In this document: one piece after another, positions 1,615 to 61,565 of the stretch
Numbering within the stretch: the stretch's first letter is position 1
How the letters are laid out: every line of letters starts with the position of its first letter
Source: Podarcis bocagei
Lineage: Eukaryota
Direction: 5' to 3' (one strand)
NCBI GenBank assembly: GCA_964188305.1
Contig: OZ076886.1
DNA: 64,000 bases
Program-made: the position numbers and the translations under genes
The notes under the pieces: generated by a model
What the model was told of the DNA's origin: nothing
The model's input: the letters and a program-made list of their open reading frames with translations, nothing else
Database searches by the model: none

Positions 1615-1896
1615 AGGCATTTGGTTCAAGGTGGTCTGGAGGGGGGGTTGGAGCACCTGTCCCCTCCAATGCGCAAAGATATTCCATTAAAGGAAACCAA
1701 GGATTTGCCATGCTTTGTCAACCCATTTCGAGGGGTAGGGCCATGCAAGAATCCCTGGGAGCATTTGGGGTGAGCTTGAGTCTGATCCTGGTTCATTGCT
1801 CCCCCACGCTGTTTACTTGTACTGACGATATGGTGGGGCCCAGTCGTCAGTGCTGCCCTGCTGAGGTCAGGTGCAGCTAGTCGGGAACCAATGCCT
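1615..1896 (+). ncRNA. Predicted multi-stem structured RNA domain, copy A (diverged paralogue of 2533-2824)
   Basis: Helices 1615-1627/1885-1896, 1637-1644/1661-1668, 1682-1685/1692-1695, 1701-1712/1742-1754, 1721-1736 hairpin, 1757-1763/1797-1803, 1821-1828/1844-1851, 1852-1860/1868-1877. Confidence 0.6.
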
Positions 1897-2478
1897 AGAC
1901 AAACTACCACCGAGCAGGCCAGAAAGCATGTTAATATGGCGGTGGAAAATAAAATAAATAAAGTAAATAAAATAAAATAACATATAAAATAAAATAACAA
2001 ATAAAATAAAATAGGTCCTTGCTTTAGGTGGTTCTGTGATATTGCACCCTGCTATTTTCTTCAAGACTGTTCCCCTCTTTGGGGCAGATGGGGGGTGCAT
2101 CTTTCCCCTATGGGGAACGACACCTGGCGGGATGCGATTGCCTTGGGATTCATTGCTCCCCCACAATGTTGCTGGTACTGACGATATGGTGGGGCCCAGT
2201 CGTCAGTGCTGCCCTGCTGAGGTCAGGTGCAGCTAGTCAGGAACCAGTGCCTAGACAAACTACCACCAAAGAGGCCGGGAAGCATGTTAATAAGGAAGTG
2301 TAAAATAAAATAAAATAATAATAAAATAAAATAAAAATAATAAAGTAAAATAGGCTTTGCTTCAGGTGGTTCCGTGATTTTGCACCCTGTGATTACCTTC
2401 AAGGCTGCTGCCAGCTTTAGGGTGAATATTTCCCCTATAGGGAACGACACCTGGTTGGCTATGGTTGCTTTGGGATTG
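1792..2478 (+). repeat. Diverged tandem duplication (~360 and ~330 bp units): half RNA domain, (AAAAT)n tract, SGNH C-terminus
   Basis: 1792-2149 aligns with 2150-2478; for example actgacgatatggtggggcccagtcgtcagtgctgccctgctgaggtcaggtgcagctagtc is identical in both units. Confidence 0.9.
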
Positions 2479-2493
2479 AAGGAAGGGTTGCAT

Positions 2494-2838
2494 TTGTGAG
2501 TGGTTTGGCGGTGAGCTAAGGCTCTGTGGCGGTTAGGCATTGGTTAAATTGGTTGGTGGAGGGGTATGGATTGGCTGTGCCTGCCCCTCCAATGCTGCTG
2601 CTGACGGGTATTCCGTTAAAGGAATTCTGAAGCTTACCATCCCCTTCGTCCAAACCCTGACGGCAGGGTGCGGGCCACGTAAGCTTCAAGGAACATGCGC
2701 GGAGTAGCTGAGGGCCTGTGACGCAGCTCCAGCTGACTCTGTCCCTTGTTCCTCCGGGACTGACTAGGGAGTCAGTGCTGTCCCCCAAGGCGGGGGGTGA
2801 CAGATAGTCATAACCAATGCCTAAGCAACCACTCTCAA
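2494..2838 (+). ncRNA. Predicted multi-stem structured RNA domain, copy B, spanning the 3' UTR from the hydrolase stop codon to just before AATAAA
   Basis: Outer stem 2494-2505/2827-2838; perfect 14-bp stem 2533-2546/2811-2824; inner helices 2557-2566/2582-2591, 2610-2614/2621-2625, 2628-2637/2679-2688, 2654-2659/2664-2669, 2689-2695/2747-2753, 2759-2765/2770-2776, 2778-2786/2794-2803. Confidence 0.65.
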
Positions 2839-5800
2839 TTTGTATGAAAATAAAGTTGTGGCCAAAAGTATGCCAAAAACCTTAAACAAAATTATGTGTG
2901 ATGTGTGAGTTATTGGGGTAGGGGTTTGGGGGGACCTCAGCACGCAATAGGTAAACCTGTGAGACTGGTTAATAAATCTATATAGTTTTTTTAAAAACAC
3001 TAAAAGGGGACAATGGGGGGGGCTTGGGGGCACAAAAACAATTAACACCACAGTGGGATGCCTATGGCAGTAGTCAGTTAAAAAAATGCAAAATGAATTT
3101 TAAATTGTTGGAGGGCAGCAAAATAATTTTAAACATTTTTTAAATAGAAAAATGGGAAGGGGTGGATTTGAGAAACAAATTTATATTCTGTAGGGTGACG
3201 GCCATGAGAAGAATTTCCCCAGATGATCTAAGTCACTGGTCCTAAGACCCACTAGTGGATTGCTGCCTGACCCAAGGTTACAACAGGAGCGCTACCACCA
3301 TTGGTTCCTAAATGCATGCTTGGGTTAAAAGTGCGACCTGGATCTGAAAAGGTAGAATTTACCCAATTTAAGTGATCTTACAGGTCTACACAATGGCAAG
3401 TGGTCTTTCAGTTGCAGCCCAATAAATTTTGGGGGTCACAGATGCCTCATCTTTGCATTAAGTATATATCACTGCAATCCTATATATGTCTACTTAGAAG
3501 GTAGTTACATTGACTTCAGCATGACTTTGCTCTCAGATAAGTGTGTATAGGATTGCATTTACTTCTATTTCAAAGTTTGGAGCTTTTTGTTTTTAAAGTG
3601 TGTCAACAATTCTCTAGTAGCTAGCAGCAAGTCTTATGATCCTTCAGAGTTATCAGAAATTCGGGAGGTTTGTTTATAACAGAAAGCTCAGCCATGGTAG
3701 AAAGCAGGTATTAACTTCGTTTCTGTTCTCATCTAATGATGCAGTGTGGAGCTCTCTAGCTTGAAAGAGGCACCTCTCAAAAGAAAATGTGACCAAGTAT
3801 ATGGAGAGTCATGTTCCTTTTAACCAAGCTCAAAAAAAGGCATAGTGCTGAACAAATAAATGAAGATGCAGCAGGGCTCCTGACAAGCCAAAGATGACAG
3901 GAGGTTAATAGTCTGTCTGGTGGGCCTAAAAGCTCATTTTTCTAGTAGCAGTCTACACCGAACCTAACCAAAGGCATACCTTTTCAAGGTTATGAAGTGG
4001 GAATTTTCTTTTTTGGGTGTGTGTGTAGAGGGGTGTTGCTTCGGAAAACTAAAGCAAGCAGCAAATCCAAGCCCCAGATGTCATATGTATGCCCCTCTCT
4101 GTCAAACCAGGTGACAATCCAAGCTCATAACCTGCTGAACTAAACCACCAACACTGCACAGACAACTCAAACTATTAAAGGACAGAAGTCAGCTGAGCTG
4201 CTGTCTGACTTGGTACCTGCAGTCACAACATAATCATGCCTGGAAGGTTGAGAGAAATGATTGACAAAAAGAAATTAAAAAGTCGTGCATATTTATAAGA
4301 TCAGTGAATAGGAAGATGTGATAGCCATCTACCCACTTCTGAAGTGGGGATGATCGCGATAGTAAAGGAAACATGGAGTGTAGCTTAGAGTTATGGGATT
4401 AAACCACAGCCAAAAGAGCCACCCGGGCCACTCCTTTGGCTTGCCAAAAGCAAGCTCCTTCAAAGTCATTGCCTGTCACTTGAGGCAAGCTTCTTCAACA
4501 TTCGCATAAGGCTGTGCATGCTGAGCCAATCTCTATCCAGCAATTTAGGAAGAAGTATCCAAAAGCCTTGAAGTTGCTCAAAAACAATACATGGCTTATA
4601 TAAGCTGTTAACTAATGAACCAAAGTTAGTTCACAACTGCAGGAAATTTTGCAGGTTTTCAATATACAGTATATTGATGCGTCTGTGATTCTTGAGACTT
4701 AAAAGCTAAATGTGGTGCATCCTTGCCAAATGAAATCCATTTTAAATGTTTTCAAAAGAAACTGAACTTTTTTTTTAAAAAAAGCACCCTGTTCTTGACT
4801 GAGATCATCCTGTTAGAAACCTTGCTTTTTCCTCAATGATAAAAGTAGGTAGTACATATTTTGACAGAACTTTCATAGTATTATTTTGTATTAATACTTA
4901 GTATTAATCTTGGCACAGTTGTTACTAACTAATGGTTGGGGAACACTGCCAAGTGAAAGACAAGGAAATGGTGACCAATCCTTCAGTAAGGATAATGGAT
5001 GCAAATACTGTGAGGAACAAAGAAAAGAACCGAGAAATATACCTCTTATGCTGAGATCAGAAGATCCAGACACTGGTTTCCCCCTTCTCCAAATCTTTGT
5101 TTGAGACTGCTGGGACACCACATCATGCACTCCCTCTCGAGGTTTTAACCAGGCATTTTGAGCTACATGCATATTAGCTCCCTCCATGCCCCCCACCATT
5201 CCAGCATGACTGGAATGGAAAGGAACCAGGATCACTCTCAGAAATGGTGGCAAGGTAGAGGGTCCTTGGCACTCCCTGCAGAACCAGAACCCTTGTTACG
5301 GGTTCCCCTTGCCCTATCAGAAGACTTCTCTCTCTTTTTAATAGAAAAAATGGCCAGGTGCCAGATGAACAATTCAGCAGCATAAAGTCTCCTCTCTCAA
5401 GAAGCAACCAGTTGGTGATCCTAGCAGCTTAACTGGCATGCATAAATGTACATTTCTTCTCAACATCGTCTGTCTCACACAAGTAGCACTGTAACTGAAA
5501 TGTAGATGAGATGAGTGAGATCGCAACCCAATTTCCCAATGCCACTGATAAATATCTGCTGTTATGTGAGGTTTTTAGCCATTATGTTGGCACAGAAGCG
5601 ATATGTACACAAAAACAACTTGTCACTCCACACTAAATATTTTTTCCTCTTCCCATGTCACTGATAATTCCATCCAATTTTCAGGATGAAAAGATGAATG
5701 CATCAGCCACAGTTCTGAAATGAATTCATAACCCTGTATTAAGATAAACAGAACTGACATTATTTAAAGCTCAAAATGCTTCCTTGACAGCTGTATTAGA

Positions 5801-6309: not shown

Positions 6310-7110
6310 GTATGATCAGAATTCATGGGGTCTGAGCTGGCAGTGACTGACAAGGAACAAGGCCTTGGTATGGTAGAGGCAGGTTGATGAAGATGCTGAC
6401 TCAGTTTGGCAACAGCTGTAAAAAAAGGGGGGTGAATACCATGCTAGAGATAATTAGGAATTAGTCCAAAAATAAAACTCCAATATCACAATTACAACAT
6501 AAAAATCTATGGTGCAGCCACACTTTGAAGACTGGGTGTAGTTTTGGACACCTCACCTCAAAAAAGATGTAGACACAGGAAAGGTTCCGAAAAATACAGC
6601 CAAAATGATAAAGGGGATGGAGGAACCCCCCTATAAGGAATATTTGGGGCTTTTTAGTTTAGAGAAAAGGTGAGGGATTTGGGGGGGGGCATGATAGAGG
6701 TCTATAAAAGTATGTATGGTATGGAGAAAGCAAACAGAGAAAAGTCTTTCTTCTTCTACCATAACACTACGACTCAGGGACATTCAATGAAACTGAATGT
6801 TAGAAGGTTCAGGACAGACAGAAGAAAGTTGTTCTCCAACAAGAAGCCAGTATGGTCATCAACTTGGATGGCTTTAAAAGAGGTTAGACAAAGTTATGGA
6901 AGATAAGGCTATTAAAAGCTGCCAACCTTGATAACTGTTTGTTCTCCCTCCACCATTAGAGGCAGTACGCCTTTGGATACCAGTAGCTAGGAATTCCAGC
7001 TGGGCAGAGTGCTGTTGCACTCAGGTTTCCCGTTTGATTGGCCACTGTAAGAACAGAGTGCTGGATGAGATGGGCCTTTAGCTCGATCTAGCAGGCTCTT
7101 CTTATGTTCT
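6310..7110 (+). mobile_element. Old CR1 LINE 3' fragment (end of RT ORF2 plus 3' UTR)
   Basis: Degenerate CR1 text such as RDLGGGMIEVYKSMYGMEK...TQGHSMKL...RFRTDRRK and a 3' tail cagg-ctcttcttatgttct; ends approximate. Confidence 0.75.
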
Positions 7111-9350
7111 AGATCCAGCCAGTAGCTGAGACCTGCCTTATTTCCAAAAAGATCTCAGTTACTCTCTAGAGTTACCATGCTCTAAAAAAATTCCACAGAT
7201 CCCATGAATGGTCTGGGAAGATATGATGCATCAGTTTCTTGAATGTGAAACTGCAGAGAGGCCCATGTAAAGGAAGCATAAATACAATAAATCATTTTCA
7301 TAACATAAAGAAGATCCCAGAAAGCCTTTTGCCAGGGTAATGCCTTGCAACTAGCTGTAGACAATTCTTATTTTTCATTCTTATCTGGGTATCTAGAAAG
7401 CTTACAAACATTTCAATAAATGTGCATAAACCAGAGATGTTATTTTAACAAAGAGGTTTAAAATATTATAAAGAAATCACCCAAATAGTTAGCACAGCTA
7501 ATTGGAGATTATTACATTTAACATGACTGGTGACAAACTGCACAATTCCAGCATGAAATGTCTATTGTTTCTTCTGATGCTCAGCTGTATGCCCTTTCCC
7601 TTCTCCTCTTTAATTACTCAGAGGTACAACATATTCACCCAGCTATCTCTCCGAGTTAGACACTGCTACATGGCAAGTTTTGCTTCAGTGCTGCCTATTC
7701 CCTCCAGTATACGTCAGACACATTATTCTTCATCTTGGGTGACAATAAACTCCATCGAACACTCTCCAGGGAAAGGCAGATTTTCTGCCTTTGTATGGAG
7801 ATGACTTCACAATCAGGAGCCAGTGATCATGATGTTCTACACTTCAAGATGAAGATGTTGTTCATATAAAAAGTCTGAATGACCACTGAACCTCTCTTAT
7901 GCTATTTTAAAAAAAGTTTGAGGAAGAAAAATATGAAGGGAAACATTTGTGACCTGGATGAGTATTCAAGCTAATGCAGGTTTTAGATTTGTACATTGTC
8001 TGAAGAAAGGATCACTTTAAGCTTCAAGCGTGAAAACAAATTTGACTGGTCCAGGGGTCCTTTACTTTTTACCTTTACCTGCATTGTTTATGGGCTGTGT
8101 GTTACTGATCCAAAACCTCACCTCCACCCCAAATCCCACCTTGTTATCATCAGATGGACTATTTTAGTGCCCAACCAACTATGCATGTAAGGATTTAACT
8201 GATAAATCTGCAGATTATTAGTAAGTCAAGATATAAGTGGAGCACCCAGCTGATTTAACAGGGACAGTAGCAGAACCAAGAGCCAAATCCTATGTAGCAG
8301 AAGGATCTCAGAAGATGTGCACATCATTTGCTCCTAGCAGCATTGAGGAGAAAGAAGGGATACGCTGAATGGAATAAAAGTTAAGAGACGTTCAGGATCT
8401 GGATGCTCGTGGCTGTTTTATAAGATCTTAGAAAAAGAAAAGTGTTAAAGAGATCATACTGAGAGAAGGAGGATGGGGCTGAGACTAGGAGCTGTTATGC
8501 CAAAGGCTTAGAAATCATACTGAATTCCTAATAAAGACTCTAAGGCTACTGGCCATAAGCCCAAAGAAACTAAGCCAGCTTCTTCATTGATGCATTCCCC
8601 AAAGCCCAGTTCACCCGAAAAATCAACTTTCTCCTACTCTGCTGCATCTGCCCAAAGAAGAGAGACCACAGAAGAGAAGAAAAGCAGGCTAGGAGGTTGG
8701 CTATTTACAGCCACACTGCTCAGGGGTGTGGGTGTGGGTGGAGGGGGCAGCAGAGCTTAGGAGGGACAGACTAGATGGAAATATTTAAAGTCTCGATCTA
8801 CCTATAGCCTTTGTCAGAGTGAATTTTGCACCTGGAGCTTTCCACTTTCCTGCAGCCACTGGCCTGCTTTGTTGGTGGTTCAGCAGACCTGAGGGGAAAT
8901 AAATGCCAGTAAGTAGCATAGTTCAACTTGGAGCTCGAGTTTTTCAAGCAGAGCTCTTTAGAATTCTTCAGCCTTAGGAAAACCTGAGATCTACATTGTG
9001 CTTTCATAACATCTTCCTTGCCCCAGGAATAACATGCGGGGCTCATAAATTGATGCCTGAGACTAATGATTGCAGTGCTAAAGAAAGGGAACTACCTGCA
9101 AAGACACCAATGTGTCATCTTTTATTGCCAATATAAAGTTATATGAATTCTTATTTTATTTTATTTGTTGTAGCTGAGGCTTTTTATCTGACACCAGAGA
9201 AGCCTTTTTGGGAGAAGCAGAAAAATAAAATATGGATGTAGTTTAAACCTTGCAAGCTTGGTTTTTTCCTCCCCTTATTGGGTGCTTGAATAAAAATGGC
9301 TCAGTTAAAAATTGAAGTAAAGCAGATGCTTTCCAGATGAAATGTTACTA

Positions 9351-12754: not shown

Positions 12755-12923
12755 NNNNNNNNNNNNNNNNNNNNNNNNNNNNNNNNNNNNNNNNNNNNNN
12801 NNNNNNNNNNNNNNNNNNNNNNNNNNNNNNNNNNNNNNNNNNNNNNNNNNNNNNNNNNNNNNNNNNNNNNNNNNNNNNNNNNNNNNNNNNNNNNNNNNNN
12901 NNNNNNNNNNNNNNNNNNNNNNN
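12755..12923. other. Assembly gap (169 N)
   Basis: Run of N in the sequence. Confidence 0.99.
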
Positions 12924-31672: not shown

Positions 31673-34600
31673 ATGGCTTCATTTGTGCCTCTACCGCCGT
31701 TTGCGCCAGCCTCTGAGTCATGGGACTCCTACCTCGCTCGGTTCGACTGCTACCTCCAAGCCAACGAGCTGACAGCAGTATCAGTGGATCAGAAGCGGGG
31801 CCTATTCCTCAGCCTCTGTGGGCCTGAGGTGTTTGAGACGGCCCAAGCATTGGTTGCGCCGGAAGCAGTCCAGGCAACACCATGGGACACGATCCAAGAG
31901 AAGCTCCGCAACCACTACGCACCAAAGCCGTCCAAGATTGCTGCCCGCCATGCGTTCTACCACCGGAACCAGGCAGAGGGGGAGTCAATCAACAACTACG
32001 CCACCGCCCTGCGACAGGCTGCAATGCACTGTGAGTTCCGAGACTTAGACGATGCCCTGATGGATCGAATCGTCTGCGGGGTCCGGGACATCCATCTGCA
32101 ACGGCGTCTCCTAGCCAAGCCAGACCTCACGCTACAGAAAGCCATTGAGGAGGCTGTGGCCTCAGAAGCTGCTGAACGCTCCGCCCAGGAGATCCGCAAG
32201 TCCAGCAGCCCGCGTCTTGCTAGGGGGCCAGTTCCGGTGCATCATGAAGAGGCCAGCAGTGACGAGGCATCCTCCAGTGAAGACGATGACGTGCACCAGA
32301 CAAAGCGGGAGCGCAGGAAGCTCCAACAGAAGTCCAAGGGCCAACCGGAATGTGCTGGCTGCGGAGGCGACCATTCCCGTGCCAAGTGTCGATTCAGAGA
32401 CGCCATCTGTAGGAGGTGTTCCAGAAGGGGCCACATCGCTAAGGTCTGCCGATCAGCTCCGTCTGACACCCCCCCTTCATCGACTCGCAAGTTCAAGTCT
32501 TCACTCCAGTCTGCCAAGGAAAGTTGTTTCGCTCTCACCAACTGCCGCTGCCCGTCTGGAACCACGATTGGCCAAACCGACTCATCTACGCGACGCAAGC
32601 TGAACGTCACGGTGCTCATTGAAGGAGCTCCATGTGACATGGAGATCGACACCGGGTCTGCCCTGTCCGTCGTGTCATGGAGCACCATCAAAAGACTGGT
32701 ACCCAGAGTATCCAAAAGGCAACTCGACTCTCACCGCGTACACCTGAGAGACTACCAGGGAAACGACATTCCCGTGGTAGGCGTTGGCCGGTTCCGGATC
32801 GCCTTCCAGGATTTTTCGGGCCTGCTCCGGTTGGTGGTGGTCGAAGGTCAGCGGCCAAGCCTCCTAGGGCTAGACTGGTTTGATGCCCTCGGCCTGGAAG
32901 TCACCGGCATCAACTGCATCTCTAACGCAGAGACTGAGGGTCTGGTCAAAGACTTTGCCGAGGTTTTTGACGGCACCTTGGGACAATATACTGGTACGCC
33001 CATCTCCTTTAGCCTTGATCCACAAGTCGCCCCCATCAAGCTTAAGCCACGCCGGGTTCCCTTTGCTCTCAAGGCTAAGGTGGACGAACAACTGGACAAA
33101 CTGATCGCCCAAGGAGTTTTGGAGCCCGTTGACCACGCAAAGTGGGAAACCCCCATCGTCATGCCTGTCAAGCCAGATGGGTCGGTGAGAATCTGCGCTG
33201 ACTACAAGTGCACAATCAACAAGGCACTTCAGCAGCACGCTTATCCGGTTCCTGTTGTCCAACACCTGCTGCATTCCCTGGGTGAGGGTAAGGTCTTCGC
33301 CAAGCTGGACCTTGCCCAAGCCTATCAACAACTGCCAGTCGATGATGCCACTGCTGAAGCCCAGACGATCGTCACCCAACGGGGGGCATTCCGTTGCCGC
33401 CGGTTGCAGTTCGGGGTGAGTGTGGCTCCTGGCATCTTCCAAAGCCTTATGGAGCGTCTCCTGCAAGGGCTTCCGGGCGTGGTACCATATTTTGATGACG
33501 TCTTGGTGTCTGCAGAATCACACCAGCAGCTGTTCGAGCGCCTCCGTGCCGTGCTGACCAGGTTCCAGGAGGCCGGGCTCAAGGTAAAGAGGGAGAAGTG
33601 CCTGATTGCCGTTCCACAGGTAGAGTTCCTGGGCTATCTTATCGATGCCTCCGGCCTTCATCCAACCACATCCAAGATCCGCACTATCCAGCAGGCCCCC
33701 ACCCCAAAGGACAAAACGGAGTTGCAGGCATTCCTGGGGCTGCTGAACTTTTATAACATGTTCCTGCCCCACAAAGCCACTGTGGCAGAGCCTCTTCACC
33801 GACTCCTTAGCACTAAGACGCCTTGGGCCTGGGGTCATCGAGAGACGGCGGCCTTCAACGCAGTCAAGGCTCTCCTTTCTTCAGACAGTGTACTGGTACA
33901 GTACAGTGAATCCAGGCCGCTGGTCCTTGCCTGCGACGCCTCACCTTTTGGCATCGGTGCTGTCCTTAGTCACCGTTTCCCAGATGGAAGAGAAGCACCG
34001 CTCGCCTACTTTTCCAGGACACTATCTCCGACGGAACGGAATTACAGCCAGCCCGACAAGGAGGCATTGGCACTTGTGGCTGGAGTGAAGAGGTTCCATG
34101 AATACCTCTATGGCAGGACTTTTGACCTCATCACTGACCACAAGCCACTCCTGGGCCTCCTCGCCGGTGATCGTCCGACTCCACCGGTCCTCTCACCGCG
34201 CATGCTGCGATGGACTGTTTTCCTGGCTGCCTACCACTATCGGCTCATCCATCGCCCGGGGAAATCGATGGGCCATGCCGACGCCCTCAGCCGTTGCCCT
34301 CTTCCAGCATTTGTGGAAGACCCGGCTCCAGCTTCATCGCTCCTTCTGATTGAGGATCTTCTGGCAGCGCCTGTATCGGCTGCCACTGTGGCCTCCGCGT
34401 CTGCCCAGGATCGCACCATCAGCCGGGTGCTCAACTGGGTGTGGAGGGGGTGGCCACAAGGGCCTTTTGCATCGGAGTTCCAGCCCTTCGCAACCAGACA
34501 ACATGAACTCTCAGCTCATCGCGGCTGTCTGCTGTGGGGAGACCGCGTCCTGATTCCCCAGGGACTCCGTCAGCGCGTCCTGGAGGCTCTGCACGTTGGC

Positions 34601-35785
34601 CACCCGGGAATTGTCAAAATGAAGGCGTTGGCTCGGTGTTACGTCTGGTGGCCTAATATGGACGATGCCATCACTGCCTGGGTATCCGCCTGTCAAGCGT
34701 GCCAAGAGTCGAGGCCTGCACCACCGGCAGCTAAGGGACACACCTGGGAGACGCCAAAGACACCCTGGTCGAGGGTACACATCAATCTGGCTGGCCCTCT
34801 TCACGGCCGGACCTTTATGGTAGTGGTGGACGCCTATTCCAAATGGCTGGAGGTCGCCCTGATGCCCTCCACCACTACCGAAGCTGTCATCCGGGTGCTG
34901 CGAGGCCTGTTTGCAACGCATGGGTGTCCTGATGTCCTTGTCTCTGACAACGGACCGCAGTTCACGCCAGGCACGTTTGAGCGGTATCTTTTGGGACTGG
35001 GCATCCGCCATGCCCTAACGGCACCTTTTCATCCATCCAGCAACGGGCAAGCGGAAAGAATGGTGCGCTCGACAAAAGAGGCACTGGCGCGCCTGGACCG
35101 GGGAGACTGGCATGAGCGGGTCGCCGAATACTTGTTCGTGCAGCACATCACTCCTCATGCGGCCACAGGGAGGAGTCCTGCTGAACTGCTTATGGGCCGC
35201 CGCCTCAGGTCACCGCTCGACCGGCTACACCCAGACTTTGCCGTGGCTGAACCCCCAGGCTGTGCCAACGCACCACGGTCATTTGTCCCAGGAAACCAGG
35301 TCTTTGCCCGGAACTATGTGGGGGACATCCCTTGGGTGCCAGCCACAGTAGTGGGAGTCACTGGACCTCACTCGTACCAGGTGGCACTCGAAGACGGACG
35401 TTTGTGGCGACGGCACATAGATCAGCTTAGGCGCAGGGTTGGCGACTTAGACACTACCGAGGTGCCCCCAACTGCGCTTGCGGCTCCAGAAGAGACACGT
35501 ACAGATGGCGAGGCCCCACCTACACCTCCCTCGCAAACTGCCAGCGTGGAGCCGAACCAAGCCGTCTCAGAACAGACTCAGACCACTCCACTTGCGGAGG
35601 CTCCACCCACAGCAGCGGATCCAGGGGAGTTGGTTCCAACGCCACCTAGGGTCGCACCACAGCCTCAGCGAGAACTGTGTGGCCCTCCGGACTTGGCTAC
35701 CAGTCCCCGGCGGTCTGGCAGAGTTTCCAAGCGCCCAACTCATTTAAAGGACTACGTTGTTGGACAGGTATCACTCTTGGTCTAA
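31673..35785 (+). CDS. Gag-Pol polyprotein, 1370 aa (two CCHC knuckles, aspartic protease, RT, RNase H, integrase with first catalytic Asp changed to Asn)
   Basis: CAGCGGDHSRAKC and CRRCSRRGHIAKVC; IDTGS; YFDD; CDAS/DKEALA/TDHKPL/ADALSR; integrase zinc region HVGHPG...CQAC, HINLAGP, SDNG, NGQAER; C-terminal RRSGR...LKDYV. Confidence 0.97.
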   Translation: MASFVPLPPFAPASESWDSYLARFDCYLQANELTAVSVDQKRGLFLSLCGPEVFETAQALVAPEAVQATPWDTIQEKLRNHYAPKPSKIAARHAFYHRNQAEGESINNYATALRQAAMHCEFRDLDDALMDRIVCGVRDIHLQRRLLAKPDLTLQKAIEEAVASEAAERSAQEIRKSSSPRLARGPVPVHHEEASSDEASSSEDDDVHQTKRERRKLQQKSKGQPECAGCGGDHSRAKCRFRDAICRRCSRRGHIAKVCRSAPSDTPPSSTRKFKSSLQSAKESCFALTNCRCPSGTTIGQTDSSTRRKLNVTVLIEGAPCDMEIDTGSALSVVSWSTIKRLVPRVSKRQLDSHRVHLRDYQGNDIPVVGVGRFRIAFQDFSGLLRLVVVEGQRPSLLGLDWFDALGLEVTGINCISNAETEGLVKDFAEVFDGTLGQYTGTPISFSLDPQVAPIKLKPRRVPFALKAKVDEQLDKLIAQGVLEPVDHAKWETPIVMPVKPDGSVRICADYKCTINKALQQHAYPVPVVQHLLHSLGEGKVFAKLDLAQAYQQLPVDDATAEAQTIVTQRGAFRCRRLQFGVSVAPGIFQSLMERLLQGLPGVVPYFDDVLVSAESHQQLFERLRAVLTRFQEAGLKVKREKCLIAVPQVEFLGYLIDASGLHPTTSKIRTIQQAPTPKDKTELQAFLGLLNFYNMFLPHKATVAEPLHRLLSTKTPWAWGHRETAAFNAVKALLSSDSVLVQYSESRPLVLACDASPFGIGAVLSHRFPDGREAPLAYFSRTLSPTERNYSQPDKEALALVAGVKRFHEYLYGRTFDLITDHKPLLGLLAGDRPTPPVLSPRMLRWTVFLAAYHYRLIHRPGKSMGHADALSRCPLPAFVEDPAPASSLLLIEDLLAAPVSAATVASASAQDRTISRVLNWVWRGWPQGPFASEFQPFATRQHELSAHRGCLLWGDRVLIPQGLRQRVLEALHVGHPGIVKMKALARCYVWWPNMDDAITAWVSACQACQESRPAPPAAKGHTWETPKTPWSRVHINLAGPLHGRTFMVVVDAYSKWLEVALMPSTTTEAVIRVLRGLFATHGCPDVLVSDNGPQFTPGTFERYLLGLGIRHALTAPFHPSSNGQAERMVRSTKEALARLDRGDWHERVAEYLFVQHITPHAATGRSPAELLMGRRLRSPLDRLHPDFAVAEPPGCANAPRSFVPGNQVFARNYVGDIPWVPATVVGVTGPHSYQVALEDGRLWRRHIDQLRRRVGDLDTTEVPPTALAAPEETRTDGEAPPTPPSQTASVEPNQAVSEQTQTTPLAEAPPTAADPGELVPTPPRVAPQPQRELCGPPDLATSPRRSGRVSKRPTHLKDYVVGQVSLLV

Positions 35786-35886
35786 GTAGGGGAAATGTAA
35801 CCGATATGCTTTTGTGCCTAATTGAACCATTACGCGTAGTGCTGTATATAAGGAAACCATTACGATTGTAACTAACGCCTTATCTC

Positions 35887-35898
35887 GGTGGGGAGGGG
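35887..35898 (+). promoter_or_regulatory. Polypurine tract
   Basis: ggtggggagggg abuts the 3' LTR. Confidence 0.85.
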
Positions 35899-36163
35899 TG
35901 TTATGTAGTGTAGTTTCACCCTGGGCCAACAGGGGAATACTGTATATAGTTTTCACTCAGGTCTGTAGATAGTTTTCACTCAGGTCCGCGGCAGTTAGTT
36001 TAGGCGGGAACTCTGAGCTGTGTGGTTACAATGTTGACAGCCGGCTGCCTATAAATACAGGCCGGCTGAGCTGTTCGCAGTCAGTTCTATTCCAGCTTAT
36101 CTTAATAAAGAGCTACTTGAAGAAATCGCTGTGCCGGCTGCTATGTCAACCCACTACTTAATA
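35899..36163 (+). repeat. 3' LTR
   Basis: Copy of 31212-31476 with a single A/G difference (ggccagct vs ggccggct). Confidence 0.97.
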
Positions 36164-55939: not shown

Positions 55940-56888
55940 TACTGCCTTGCATAAAGTTTATTTTATCCACGCGGCAGCCTTTGTTCAACCTTAACAAAGG
56001 TCCTTTCCACATCAAGCCTACATCCAGCGCCAGAAACACCCAGCATCTTGGGTCAGCTGCTGGAGCTCCCCCATTGTTTCTTTACCATTAATTTCCACAA
56101 TTAACCACAAATAAAAAAGAATAAAAATAGAAGATCCATACAGCAATAACACTTCAAAATCTTATCTTTGAGATTCTTTATTTTTTAAATGTGTGTCTTT
56201 TTTTTAAAAGGTGCGGAGGGTGACAGTGGACTACAACAGCCCTGCCATGTAGTCTGCTCTCTATACTGCACGGTGGGCAGCCCGAGGGAGTAACATAGAC
56301 AACCCTGTTGTGTAGACCACTTGTATTATTATGCTCTATTGTGGTTTGGAGGAAGACCATGGCTGAGAAGAGTTTACAACAGCCATATGGTGTAGTCCAC
56401 TCTCATTTTGCCCCTAAGGCAGCTTGGTGCTTGGTGCATGTGGCTAAGAGGTGGGGTGGTGATAGGGGGTTCACAGCAGCCCTGCAGTGCAGGCCACACT
56501 TTCTCTCCACATGCAGCTCCCTTTTCTCTTTTCATAGCTCTGTAACAGGAATTGCATGCAGGGAAAGCATGCCTCTGAGCATATACAGACCACCACCCCA
56601 GGCCCCAACACCCCATAGGGGGTTTTTTGGGGGGGTGAAGAGAGTGGGTGAAAAAGTTGCCTCTGCTGCCTTCTGTTCACCCGTCTTTTCTGCCTCGCTG
56701 GTACGCCTCCCCCCTCCCCCCCCAAAGCCAAACTTCAAAGGCCCTAAGGAGGCCTACCCTGTAGCGCTGCTTGGAGTAATCTTCGGTCTCTCAAAGGGTG
56801 ATGGGGGCTCCTCCCACCGTGAAGTCCCAGGAAAAAGGATGGAGAGCCTTCTTTGATGCTTGCAAGGCATGTGACTTCTTTTTAAAAG

Positions 56889-57851
56889 CAGTGGCATAGC
56901 GTGGGGGGTGCCAAGGGTGCCGGCCGCACCGGGCGCAACATCTGGGGGGGGCGAGTCCAGAGGGAAGGGACAAGTTCCTTCCTCCGCCGGGCTCCCCGCA
57001 GCCACCGCCAGCCTTGCGCCGTAGCGCGCGCGCGCCCCCCGCCACCGCTGCGGCTGCGCTCCACTCACTGCTTGCAGGAGGAGCAGCCGCTGCAGCAGCG
57101 CCGACACCGCCACCGACGCCTGGCCGGCACGGGCAGCCTCCGCACCCCGACGCGCCGCCGGGCCTCGCCGCGCCCTACGCTCCCCCAAAACCTCCGAGAG
57201 GAAGCCGGTGGGCGGGCGAGGCCCGGCTAAGCCTCTCGCCAGCGGGTTAAGGGGCTTTCGGTTTTAAAAGGATTAGCTTGGGAAGGGGGGGGATGCTCGC
57301 CGGCAAGCGCCTGCTCCGCGTTTCCAAAGGCGCTCGCCATCCGAGGGACACGGAGCGCTTGCAAGGAACGGGCTCCGTGGAGCAGGTTAGGAAGAGATCC
57401 CTTCCCTGGCAGGCCGCCGGCTTCGCCAGCTGTTTCCCATTCACGATCAGGAGGAACTTCAGGCTGCTTTCAGCTTTGGTAGAGGGAATCTAAGCAAGGG
57501 GATGGAGCCGGTGCCCTGAGGAAAGGCGGCAGCATTGGGTTTGTTTTTAGTTTAGAGAAAAGGCAAGCAAGAGGCGACAGGAGAGAAGCCTGCAAAACTA
57601 AGGCATGGCAAGGAGAGAGTGGACAGAGAGGAAAGTTTTTATCCCTCTCTCTGTACAATATAACTCGTGGGCATCCAGTGAAGCTGAACGTTGGAACAGT
57701 GGCGTAGTGTGGGGGGTGCCAAGGGTGCCGGCTGCACCGGGTGCAACATGGGGGGGGGCGCTCGCTCGCACTCGGGTGCTAAAATCCACGGGTTAGGGGG
57801 CGCAAATTACTTGCCTTGCCCCGGGTGCTGACAACCCACGCTACGCCACTG
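56889..57851. mobile_element. Nested hAT element with duplicated left end and CpG-island-like cargo
   Basis: TIRs cagtggcatagcgtggg/cccacgctacgccactg; perfect TSD tttaaaag (56881-56888, 57852-57859); second left end at 57697. Confidence 0.9.
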
Positions 57852-59334
57852 TTTAAAAGCCCCTTTTCACACTACACCGTGCCAGGATTGGGGCCTCTCG
57901 CCCCCCCTTCTCTCTTTTCTGGGAGCGGGGCTCCTTGCTGCCAGGCAGGCGAAAGGGGAGAGTTGCAAAGAAACTGAGACAAATGCCTAGAGAGGCTTGT
58001 GCTGGAAGAAAATGAGTGAGAAAGACGTGGGGGGGGGGAGTGGCATGAGAGAGAGAAGCTTCTTTTTGAAATGCACCAACTGTTTAATTAAGGGGCATTT
58101 TTAAAAAGAAAGAAAGTTGTTTAAACACTAAGAAATGAGATGATAAGCTCTGGGGTTTGCACCTCTATTTGGATTCAGTCGTGGAGGGGGCACCGAATGT
58201 CACTCTCAGGGCGCCCCCCCACTCCCAAGCCTACCGCGAGCAGGGGGGGGGAGCCGCTTTGCCGTGGCTTGTCTGAGACTCAGCCAGAGAGGGGAGGGGG
58301 AGTGGGCTGCCAATTTGTGCAGCCGCACCATCCGCCCACCCACCGGGGGTGCCGATTGGCGTGGCCAGCCACTCATCGGGGGTGCCGATTGCAGGGGGAC
58401 GGGGGGGTGGTGCTTGCCAATGCTTTGCCACTCAGCTTTGCCACTCAGCTTGTGGGAGTCACGGGGGGGGGGGCTGAGAGGAGAGGAGCGGGCTGCCCCA
58501 GAGTGGGGAAGTGAGCGCACCCTGACTCTCCTTTCTGGACACTCAGCCTGTGGCGCCCTCCAAAATCTGATGCCTTGGCGCCCCGTGCCACTAATATCTA
58601 TGGGTAAGATGCCCCTGATCCCTTGATCTGTATGAGTGGAAATCATAAAGTTTGGATGTTTTTAAGCACTGGAAATCAGGGCCTGGAACTATAAAGTAGA
58701 GTTAAAAACAGCCAAAAATTGAGGAGAAAATCAGGTGAAGCGGACGCCAATTACCAATTCACCTCAGGCCTTGAAATGACAGTCTATGTTTATTACCTAG
58801 GATCCACAGGAAGCCACCTTGGACAATTGGTCCATGTAGCTCAGTATGTCTGCATTAATGGCAGTGGCTTTGCAAGACTTCTGACAGGAGTCTTTCTCCA
58901 GCCTCCCTCGAGATGTCAAGGGATTGAATCTGGGACTCTGCATGCTAAGCATGGGCTCTACAGCTAAGCTACATTCCCTTGCAATGCACACACTGTGTAT
59001 ACAGTCTGAGCAGCAGGTGGGGGTTCAGTTGGCTGGTATTCATCCAGTCCATTAGTCTGTGAACCACAACAAATACTAAAAGCATCACTTTCCAGGAAAG
59101 CAATCGTGGCTCCTTCTGTAATGCAGCTTTTCAAGCTCACTTCAACTATATCCCTGATCCTTGCCGTTTCCCATAAGGATGGCTGTCACCATCTCCACAG
59201 GTCAGAAGCCATGAAAAAAGAAAACAGAAGCACTTTGCTGTGAGTACGTGCCTCACATGTCTCTGGACTTGCATTCAGTTTTTTTAGACCAAGCTACCAT
59301 AATGTTTAGTAGATGTCTGAATTTTGAATTCATG

Positions 59335-59739
59335 TGTGTGCGTCCTATGGGGCGAATGCAGGCTTTTGCTGAAGCCTGGAGAGCGAGACGGGTCGGTGCG
59401 CAACCTCGCCATCGCTCTCCCACCCGTTCTGGGGACTGGGGTCAGGGGAAGCTCAGGCTTCACCATTGCTCTCTGACATGTTCTGGGGGCTGGGGTCGGG
59501 GGAAGCTTGGGCTTCCCCCGCCCCCTGCCCCGCAAGCTCCAAGAGCGATGGCGAGGTTGTGCAACCTCGCCTTCGCTCCCGGACCCCCAGCCCCAAGGCT
59601 AAAAACGAAGCCAGGAAAGCGAGCGGGATCCATCCCGCTCACTGCCATGGCTTCTTTGCTCTTTGGGGCCGGGGGGGATATTTCCCCCCCCCTGTATCCC
59701 CCCCCCCAAAAAAGTGCGTCCTATAGGGCGAAAAATACG
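59335..59739. mobile_element. One-ended pogo/Tigger-like element with GC-rich interior
   Basis: Right end gtgcgtcctatagggcgaaaaatacgg|ta; internal gtgcgtcctatggggcgaat; left TIR not found. Confidence 0.6.
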
Positions 59740-61565
59740 GTAATAGTATTATACACCTTTGGCTTAAGAGGTGAGTCAAAGCAGTTTGCAGACAACAGGA
59801 GGGTTTCTCCTTCCATGCCACAGCACGAGAATGCTCCTTGCTTTACCTTAAGCTGTTTGGTAAAGCAGGGGTAAAAGAAAAGGAAAGTAAAGTGGGGGAT
59901 AGACTTGTTAGCTGTTCTTTTTTGTGGGAGGGAGGCTATCCTCATTTGAATAAGTTTTCTGGTATGAATTATCTGCCAAATACATCTAAATGCCTGAGAT
60001 AGGGGTAGAAGACTGGTGTTAAGAAGGCAGAGTTTTGTTGTGTTTGTGGGTAAGGATAGGCAGATTTGTCATTTTCAGTTTTTCATTCCCCCCCCCCCCC
60101 GGAAGAGGAGAGCCTCTGAAATGTCCAGGTCAAACCTTCAAATCCATCTGTGAGACTTGGCAGTCACCAGTTGCCTTGCAGCAGAGCACTTATTCCACTG
60201 CTTTGGAACCTAAAGCTAAACTTCCAAGGATCCCTCCAGATGGTGCAGGGACACCAGTTGTTACAAAGGACATAGAAAAAACAGCTTTTGGCAGCAGAAT
60301 GAAAATCTTGCCCAAAGAAAGAATTAAGAGAAGGCAGGCAGCATCCAGACTAGCAATTCCACACAGCAAGGAGCTGTTTTAAGAAGCAGTTTTAAAGAAC
60401 TTAACTCAGCAGGCAACAGGATGTGTTAGGCACAGATATCTTTTACAAAGCATGCATTAGTGTTTGAGAAGCTGTACTACAGGAGGTTCCCAAAAAGAAT
60501 TCTGGTAAGTCTCCACAGTCACCTGTTTGGCTCAACTTTCAAGGAAGGTCACAGGAGGGTTATTGTATCTACTGTTTAGACATAAAGTATCAGAACTCCA
60601 TAATATCTGCTCACCTTCTCCCTTGGGTGGGCGGGGTTTGCGACTCCGCGCGGGCTCCTAGGACAGGTGAGCCACCCACCTTTGTTCCAGGGAAGCCATT
60701 GCCCTGCCCCCATCTCAGCAGGCCTAATGGGAAGCTGGCTGGGGTGGAGCGAGGATCAGCATAAGGGGTTGATGCCCCTCGGCCCAGGCTCACTTGTTTC
60801 CTTTACAGGTTCCTTTCCAGGTTCCAGGACCTTTGCTGGTGAGGTAAGTGTGTCCCGTCCCCCTGACCATGTGGGTTTTGGGCTGCTGTGCTGGCTCCGC
60901 AATACTGCCCTGCTAGCATGTGTGTGTGTGTGCCTAGCAACTGTTTCCTTTTACAGAGCAGTGCGCACTGCTCAGCTGGGTTGGAACTCCCGCAACCGCA
61001 GGAAGCACTTTGTTGTTGCGTGTGTGCTGGTTTCTGTGGGGGGCAAGAGACACTGCCAGCCTATGGGTTCCTTTTCAACCCCCCTGTACTGTTCTTTGTG
61101 GCTGTTTTTTCTCTGCTACCATACCCTTTTACTGGCTAGTTTTAACCGGGTAGCTCTGGGTGTCTGATTGTGTTGCGGCAGCAATTTGCGAGGTTAGAGA
61201 GGCTGGTTTCCTCCCTCATAACCTTTTTAAAATTCTTCTATGCTGGCCGATCGTTTGCCTGATTGTGCTTGTGCACCATGTGTGGTTGGTTTTGATTGTG
61301 GGTGTGTTTGTTGTGCTGGCGCTTGTTTGTTTGTTGTTGTTGTTGTCCTGTTGCTGGGTTTGAGAGGGAATCCCTGCCTGTATCCTCCATTTGGGAAAGG
61401 AGCACTTGTTCGGTGGCGGCGTCCATCTTAAGTTTAACCACGTGGCCCCGTCGCCAGGGACATTAGCATCCGAGACAACTGCATCCTGTACTCGGCTAGG
61501 GCAGTTCCTGTTGCTGCTTTCAGTCTCAGCAGTCACTGCACACGTTGCGAGGGAATAATTTAGAG

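Follow-up and report, generated by a model that had tools for sequence, protein, structure and literature searches.

A conserved RNA fold within the B split direct repeat of Ngaro-like retrotransposons of lizards

To our knowledge, no order of retroelements is less well understood than the tyrosine-recombinase retrotransposons (DIRS, Ngaro, PAT and VIPER), which lack both a primer-binding site (PBS) and a polypurine tract. In R2 and other elements without long terminal repeats (non-LTR elements), structures in 3' untranslated regions (3' UTRs) bind the reverse transcriptase (RT), as for example do stem-loops common to partners among long and short interspersed elements (LINE/SINE); R2-type folds are 3'-terminal, measure a few hundred nucleotides (nt), lie just before the end of the RNA and are poor in conserved sequence but conserved in their helices. 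For the DIRS order, the primer and the start of reverse transcription are unknown (PMC7192593, the one experimental study), and a small 3' hairpin of 14 nt was noted in DIRS-1 by Poulter & Goodwin (PMC7192593). Ngaro elements carry split direct repeats in the order A1 ... B1-A2-B2 (Goodwin & Poulter 2004; summary in PMC9210276), and the published description of vertebrate Ngaro-like elements places a hydrolase open reading frame (ORF) after that of the recombinase (PMC9210276). Here we analyse a stretch of 64,000 nt from the lizard Podarcis bocagei (contig OZ076886.1; hereafter the window), which contains the 3' end of a Ngaro-like lacertid retrotransposon (order DIRS) that has decayed and been rearranged, and within it two copies, A and B, of a large multi-stem domain. 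Our results establish that this domain takes up the initial ~300 nt of the B split direct repeat, of which intact elements have two, B1 and B2, and confirm that compensatory changes have preserved its fold among lacertid, gecko and agamid families. The B repeat itself is already known; the conserved RNA fold within it appears to be new, with no Rfam match and no description that we could find in the literature.

The element of the window shares with the Ngaro elements described so far (PMC9210276) the element type, the repeat and a hydrolase ORF that follows the recombinase as in amphibian Ngaro. These repeats have however been described by position and identity, and our literature search found no described structure in them, neither the fold in B nor its anchoring at the stop codon nor the GGCGG/hairpin module at its base. 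Like the internal complementary region (ICR) and the 3' hairpin of DIRS-1, the domain is a cis element that a tyrosine-recombinase retroelement carries near its 3' end, and it may be tied to starting or completing the synthesis of complementary DNA (cDNA); B1-A2 takes the role of circle-junction template. The ICR, however, acts by complementarity to the element termini whereas the domain is a conserved intramolecular fold, and the 14-nt hairpin of DIRS-1 compares with ~350 nt and 8-9 helices here. The way in which the domain is proposed to work resembles that of the R2-type folds, and here too a secondary structure at the 3' end of the RNA is conserved despite sequence turnover; yet R2 and other non-LTR elements rely on target-primed reverse transcription and an endonuclease, Ngaro on a tyrosine recombinase and extrachromosomal cDNA, and their structures have no sequence or Rfam similarity to the domain. 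With the R/U5-PBS region of LTR elements, finally, the domain has in common that it is a repeated terminal segment with a poly(A) signal, and the motif starting with TGG beside a stem is superficially PBS-like. However, next to the hairpin at the base of the fold (P0) only TGGCGG is conserved, the sequence after it differing completely between lineages, and no tRNA-like gene was found with ARAGORN. A match in Rfam, which according to an earlier reading of the sequence alone would have removed the novelty of the domain, did not emerge: searches of Rfam 15 including the self-cleaving ribozymes gave chance-level matches only (best MIR528, for which 21.7 bits compare with a gathering score of 62, all others below 21 bits).

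The predicted folds of copies A and B, when parsed into their branches, follow one plan in which a long closing stem, P1, surrounds the hairpins P2 to P7. Copy A (1615-1896; all features are on the plus strand) is the P1-P7 domain of a second Ngaro subfamily, as judged from its fold and from 64% identity to the B domain of the lacertid relative L001, and copy B (2533-2824), identified by fold, branch parse, identity to the relative L003 and covariation, is the P1-P7 multi-branch domain forming the 5' part of a B repeat. P1 pairs 1615-1627 with 1885-1896 in copy A and 2533-2546 with 2811-2824 in copy B, where it is a perfect 14-bp inverted repeat; P2 pairs 1637-1644 with 1661-1668 and 2557-2564 with 2584-2591, and P3 lies at 1682-1695 and 2611-2624, respectively. 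The minimum free energy (MFE) calculated with ViennaRNA is -116.9 kcal/mol for copy A (z -2.4) and -139.7 kcal/mol for copy B (z -5.4, with none of 200 shuffles as good), and the two copies align with 73% column identity and many gaps. Around copy B an outer stem pairs 2494-2505 with 2827-2838, both arms being supported by the arm-swap test described below. It is followed at 2505-2532 by the P0 module, delimited by motif location and arm-swap tests, which consists of TTGGCGG (2505-2511), a hairpin GAGC/GCTC (2513-2524) and TGGCGG (2527-2532). The complete layout thus is an outer stem, the P0 hairpin between UUGGCGG and UGGCGG, and the large P1-closed branch with P2-P7. Since the fold ends ~10 nt 5' of AAUAAA, any transcript that is polyadenylated in B has it at its 3' end. 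The poly(A) signal with the conserved motif AATAAAGTTGTGGCC occupies 2849-2863 (identified by comparison of relatives) and is exact in L001, L003, L005-L009 and L011, nearly exact in L010 and degenerate in the decayed L012. The sequence-only reading had put helices P1-P7 and the outer stem in this order, which MFE folding recovers, and every string it quoted is found where it was placed; it was right that the outer stem ends about 10 nt before AATAAA, whereas the hydrolase stop codon, with which the stem was said to begin, lies inside the 5' arm (TGA, 2497-2499) and does not provide its first base.

As two copies alone cannot establish covariation, relatives were sought through the hydrolase. 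The hydrolase piece at 1273-1575 has 238 relatives among 1.8 billion representative proteins (phmmer); those with named sources belong to the lizards Podarcis, Eublepharis, Phrynocephalus and Paroedura, and relatives are entered at source as 'SGNH hydrolase-type esterase domain-containing protein'. Twelve loci, L001-L012, are contigs encoding such relatives: L001, L002, L003, L007 and L008 come from one lacertid assembly, L005 from a second assembly, L004 from a short Logan contig of a separate sequencing run, L006 and L011 from Podarcis lilfordi, L012 from P. raffonei, L009 from the gecko Eublepharis and L010 from the agamid Phrynocephalus. Ten further relatives were obtained in this way from genomes of lacertids, geckos and agamids, and in each of them the stretch from the hydrolase stop codon to AATAAA takes up the same fold; all ten are independent and keep the same helix order despite sequence divergence, with the closing stem P1 around 5-7 hairpins, and the interiors of L005 and of L007 to L011 are unalignable. 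Compared with shuffled sequences, the plus strand of the stretch from stop codon to AATAAA has MFE z-scores of -2.1 to -8.0 in the 11 sequences.

The evidence that the fold has been selected comes from exchanging helix arms between lineages. Plain MAFFT alignments had fallen short in RNAalifold, which recovered only P0, P1, P2, P3 and P4a on the full stretch and, owing to misaligned hairpin arms, nothing when the P0 module of distant lineages was compared; duplex tests of native against swapped arms were therefore used. Helix arms were taken from the columns of MAFFT alignment A3, for which conserved motifs served as anchors, and not from folding, and the duplex energy of each lineage's own arms was compared with that of arms exchanged between lineages in 20,000 permutations, ignoring kinship, over ~9 independent lineages for the large domain and 14 for P0. 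Native P1 arms pair with -23.2 kcal/mol as compared to -15.4 +/- 1.4 kcal/mol when swapped, and only one permutation was as good; the same holds for P0 within the squamates (-10.7 versus -7.4 +/- 0.8 kcal/mol, one as good). The outer stem (-17.0 versus -12.2 +/- 1.2 kcal/mol) and P4 (-22.8 versus -18.7 +/- 1.2 kcal/mol) were equalled in 12 and 11 permutations, respectively, and P2 (-19.3 versus -16.9 +/- 1.0 kcal/mol) in 158. Neutral descent from one hairpin predicts that native and swapped arms pair equally well; the native arms pair better, as those of a structure maintained by selection would. Individual changes illustrate this. P1 shows double changes from A-U to U-A (L005), U-A to C-G (L007), A-U to C-G (L011) and U-A to A-U (L007 and L008), and the P3 stem UUCC/GGAA has become GCCC/GGGC in L011 and AUCCC/GGGAU in L012 around an unchanged loop of GUUAAA type. 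The arms of the outer stem read GAGUGGUU/AACCACUC in L001, GAGUGUUGGC/GCCAACACUC in L005, GGUAUUGGC/GCCAAUACC in L007 and GGAGUGUUGGCG/CGCCAAUACUCC in L009, and P6 and P7, like P0, occupy the same place across lineages with unrelated sequences. Both the proposal that paired bases change together, originally drawn from copies A and B, and that of a selected multi-stem structure are thus borne out by the ten further relatives.

Where the domain belongs became clear from the intact relatives. L001 has an ORF1, an RT ORF, a recombinase ORF and an ORF for a hydrolase of 207 amino acids; in Pfam, RVT_1 is matched with 51 bits, above the cut-off, Phage_integrase with an E value of 1.6e-4, below the cut-off, and Lipase_GDSL_2 by ORF4 with an E value of 3e-4, below the curated cut-off. 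Its hydrolase ORF is unbroken at the place of the window's copy A, a fold of copy B type follows the stop codon, and a second, identical copy lies ~814 nt further on. The repeats of L001 are A1 at 365-572, equal to A2 at 7079-7286, and B1 at 6653-7080, equal to B2 at 7467-7894, both pairs being 100% identical, and the same canonical Ngaro layout A1 ... B1-A2-B2 is found in L003, L006 and L007. Across these four elements the split direct repeats, A and B, are 96-100% identical, B1 and B2 being 99.5-100% identical in L001, L003 and L007 and 98.8% identical in L006. In all four, B starts at GGCGG (position 2528 in the window), 1-6 nt 5' of the P1 5' arm, contains the whole P1-P7 branch and then AATAAAGTTGTGGCC, and ends ~100 nt later at the element terminus. 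Two-thirds of the known B repeat, on its 5' side, are thus made up by the folded domain, which does not lie outside the terminal repeats. It follows that a full-length transcript carries the fold from GGCGG on twice, in B1 and in B2. The outer stem and P0 lie just outside the B repeat and are present at B1 only; AATAAA is in B, ~25 nt after P1, and a TATA-like box is in the A repeat. Between A2 and B2 these four elements have a unique stretch of ~180 nt (L001:7287-7466), which ends in ..AAGGTT before GGCGG. RNA-seq reads of a related species span the junction of this stretch with B2, and a short transcript from an A2 promoter into B2 is possible.

The junction of B and A is itself a near-perfect palindrome, AACACGC-AAA-GCGTGTT (L001:7065-7095), ~130 nt beyond the fold, and the motif recurs at the element ends (L001:365 and L001:7894; 2938-2947 in the window). 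This palindrome is a candidate for the core site of the tyrosine recombinase on the circle junction, and a better candidate than the fold. A further element, L007:2642-4988, is an internally deleted Ngaro copy of ~2.35 kb that retains A1, the hydrolase ORF, B1-A2-B2 and, of the recombinase, a C-terminal fragment; it has lost gag, RT and the greater part of the recombinase, its A and B repeats are 100% identical and the full fold is kept. It looks like a recently inserted non-autonomous derivative, and its retention of A, the hydrolase ORF and the full fold is as expected if the cis requirements reside in the repeats.

The base of the fold appears to be older than the squamate domain. Scanning metagenome contigs with the hydrolase alignment yielded 27 loci, and 14 of these also match the recombinase query upstream and are therefore distant Ngaro-like elements, with 26-37% hydrolase identity and mostly on AT-rich marine contigs. 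About 11 distant loci have, 15-115 nt after the hydrolase stop codon, an outer stem (e.g. GAAUUUUU/AAAAAUUC) around UUGGGG, a hairpin and GUGGCGG. The squamate counterpart consists of the outer stem, UUGGCGG, P0 and UGGCGG, after which the large P1-P7 branch has been added ahead of the outer stem's 3' arm. The hairpin at the P0 position is AU-rich in the marine elements and GC-rich in lizards, and over 14 lineages including the marine ones its native arms pair with -9.9 kcal/mol as compared to -5.5 +/- 0.6 kcal/mol for swapped arms, with none of 20,000 permutations as good. Comparison of motifs and predicted pairing thus indicates that the base module, UUGGSGG, hairpin and GUGGCGG within an outer stem, is common to squamate and distant marine Ngaro-like elements. 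No large structured domain was found downstream in the marine elements (z 0 to -2.3), which makes P1-P7 an elaboration, specific to one lineage, of an older junction. Separately, GTTGTGGCC, which follows AATAAA in nearly all squamate elements, also occurs ~180 nt after the P0 module in one marine lineage (L021:1464, L022:1469 and L032:1269), which could be chance or a second old signal.

But what would an element gain from such a fold? We somewhat favour the view that it serves as a cis-acting platform on the plus-strand genomic RNA, near the 3' end, and would be recognised by the element's own proteins. Acting in cis beside the 3' end of this RNA, it would most likely recruit the reverse transcriptase or position the start of the first strand; transfer from B2 to B1 may also be considered, and a role as packaging signal for Gag seems less likely. 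Transfer of nascent cDNA between B2 and B1 may be marked by the GGCGG direct repeats found at the junction, and either a first-strand start or B2/B1 transfer at the platform would, if true, explain why the B repeat starts exactly at GGCGG. More tentatively, and with distinctly less confidence, we raise the possibility that the UUGGSGG-hairpin-GUGGCGG junction together with the squamate P1-P7 branch constitutes the initiation signal for Ngaro reverse transcription, in the form of a protein-recognised RNA platform. The priming problem would thereby gain a concrete, testable object, a covarying RNA fold at the boundary of the B repeat whose core motif is common to very distant relatives, and the fold may moreover serve as a structural signature for annotating Ngaro 3' ends and non-autonomous derivatives, of which the sampled lacertid genomes offer ample material with thousands of copies. 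That the region, including the B2 junction, is transcribed at low level is indicated by RNA reads (54 and 40, from ~12% of two runs of a related species).

Several observations weigh against a platform on RNA. The reads just mentioned are few and no RNA ends were mapped, both window copies lie in dead, rearranged DNA, and the P1-P7 branch, being absent from the distant marine elements, is not essential to all Ngaro elements. In close pairs (L001/L006, copy B/L003 and L007/L008) changes are only weakly depleted in the pairs predicted from a single sequence. The minus strand folds well too (z -3.9 to -7.3), almost as well as the plus strand, which would suit a fold that works on single-stranded cDNA, holding ends together or presenting double-stranded sites for the second strand, the circle or the tyrosine recombinase. 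DIRS-1 intermediates are linear single-stranded DNA, its internal complementary region acts after first-strand synthesis (PMC7192593), and the domain belongs to the repeat that forms the circle junction of B and A. On the other hand, the plus strand has the lower energy in all 11 sequences and more pairs as well as more G-U pairs in 10 of the 11, the G-U fraction being 0.100 as opposed to 0.040 on the minus strand. This G-U bias is however largely compositional: the plus strand is rich in G and U, and almost the same bias remains after shuffling (0.162 versus 0.083), so that the preference for RNA is only modest and a role on single-stranded DNA retains some plausibility. As the likely crossover palindrome AACACGC..GCGTGTT lies ~130 nt beyond the domain and conserved loops such as GUUAAA are not needed by DNA hairpins, we nevertheless regard action on single-stranded DNA as rather unlikely.

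The position of the fold would also permit control of 3'-end processing, a structure in B1 damping or timing the first poly(A) site and so giving read-through transcripts with A2 and B2, a problem that LTR elements face as well. AATAAA and a GU-rich tract follow the fold at 25-60 nt in both B copies, B1 alone has the outer stem and P0, which lie outside the repeat, and RNA reads span the junction of the ~180-nt stretch after A2 with B2 (loose ends 2527 and 2544), so RNA with sequence downstream of B1 exists. These junction reads could however come from an A2 promoter, and a 290-nt domain of seven helices is far larger than occlusion of a poly(A) site would require; B1 and B2 do not differ in P1-P7, and the module of the distant elements lies 15-115 nt from the stop codon with no conserved AATAAA beside it. 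Taken together this makes such a control function improbable. Retroelements of other orders carry ribozymes, hammerheads in Penelope-like elements and ribozymes like that of hepatitis delta virus (HDV) in R2, and a multi-helix junction with few invariant unpaired motifs (GGCGG, GUUAAA) might likewise belong to a new catalytic RNA, self-cleaving or of another type, by which the transcript is trimmed. Catalysis had been listed among the possible roles from the sequence alone, and nothing supports it: no Rfam ribozyme family matches even at E<=1-5, the number (5-7) and length of the helices vary between families, which is unusual for a catalytic core, and at low depth the read ends show no pile-up. 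We therefore consider it very improbable. Hardly more credible is the notion that the fold has no function, the hairpins being by-products of template switching, palindrome-generating mutation and GC-rich composition and the likeness of A and B mere common descent. It is true that the window element has been pieced together, with a tandem duplication and junctions resembling template switches, and the weak depletion of change in predicted pairs among close relatives points the same way; against this, native arms pair much better than swapped arms in five separate helices, and P0 and P6 stand at the same place though their sequences are unrelated between lineages. The platform on plus-strand RNA thus remains the reading to which we incline.

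The history of the window's own copies can be reconstructed from the same relatives. Copy B with its tail (2492-2947) stems from a further lineage and is 94-95% identical to the intact element L003, copy B itself being 96.7% identical to both L003 B copies and 68% identical to L001; this likeness begins exactly at the stop codon, and the hydrolase upstream is not L003-like. At 2947 the alignment to the B repeats of L003 and L001 stops, a single-copy contig starts at 2945, and the k-mer depth falls from 10^4-10^5 to ~90 in two genome runs, which marks the element terminus. No A2 or second B follows, so the window keeps one terminal B (2528-2947) and the foreign copy A; this single B has a left context of B1 type and a right context of B2 type, a combination that recombination between B1 and B2, or a template transfer between them, would be expected to leave. 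Copy A is a B domain, of a different subfamily, that has been joined to a hydrolase ORF now broken. On its left, the stop codon TAA at 1612-1614 cuts this ORF after ..PGLKII, and a second genomic contig, which shows 13 differences, spans the 1612 junction; on its right, B-type homology extends to ~1904, where a short CCAC common to both marks the switch to hydrolase coding sequence (..ARKHVN..). The same domain type elsewhere runs into the usual spacer of 18-20 nt and AATAAA (joints 1902/1904->2849 in two species). Hence, of the proposal that the domain makes up the whole 3' UTR, the part concerning copy B, which fills the space from stop codon to poly(A) signal, stands, whereas copy A is not a normal 3' UTR. 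In effect, the two copies represent two Ngaro subfamilies joined in one rearranged, non-coding element, which is why they covary. That copies A and B might be degenerate duplicates of hydrolase C-terminal coding sequence, of which there are weak echoes at the peptide level (WRG..CP, RK.RI), was rejected, as relatives with an uninterrupted ORF have the same fold after the stop codon; likewise, copy A is no intron-like insert of an active element, as its domain type elsewhere continues to a normal tail and AATAAA.

The remaining parts of the element are as follows. Positions 1-2900 of the plus strand are the 3' part of a tyrosine-recombinase retroelement, as translation and tblastn with the relatives' proteins agree, and the 5' part of the element lies outside the window. 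A decayed RNase H end and the recombinase ORF occupy 1-1262 (three-frame translation, tblastn), of which 791-1267 is matched with 39% identity by the relative P0012, including the motifs HSFRIG and GxWKSDA..YIR. The N-terminal half of an SGNH/GDSL-type hydrolase ORF (GHSIVHW, GENDL) follows at 1270-1614 (phmmer, tblastn); it has a frameshift near 1575, is 45-54% identical to the relatives P0003-P0007 over 1318-1575, and its TAA at 1612-1614 directly abuts copy A. A recombinase ORF downstream of RT/RNase H and an extra hydrolase ORF after the recombinase, here broken, are those of an Ngaro element. Beyond copy A, hydrolase C-terminal coding remnants (..ARKHVN.., then GGSVILHP..DGVHLSPMGNDTW) extend over 1897-2150 (tblastn with P0003-P0007, repeat analysis), and a tandem duplicate of 1792-2150 (357 bp, 80% identity) at 2149-2477, found by repeat analysis and tblastn, holds a second hydrolase C-terminus and a partial domain copy. 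This third copy, A' (2150-2255), comprises the P5 3' arm, P6, P7 and the P1 3' arm, and no further domain copies besides A, A' and B were found in the 64-kb window. Contigs identical to each tandem unit have a k-mer depth 20-55x the single-copy level, and the rearranged form itself is therefore multi-copy in the genome. After the poly(A) signal, the remainder of the B repeat runs from 2864 to the element 3' terminus at 2947 (..CAGCACGCAA), as determined by alignment to the B repeats of L003 and L001 and by k-mer depth.

Both tandem units contain an (AAAAT)n-like microsatellite (1943-2015 and 2292-2352) within hydrolase coding sequence at lysine-rich ..AKKV.. codons. In the otherwise single-copy flank, 3306-3386 shows a k-mer depth raised 30-fold and some RNA reads and is probably another small repeat. 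Elsewhere in the window there are a run of N at 12755-12923 and GC-rich blocks at 32000-36000 and 56000-60000 (0.52-0.58 against a background of ~0.41).

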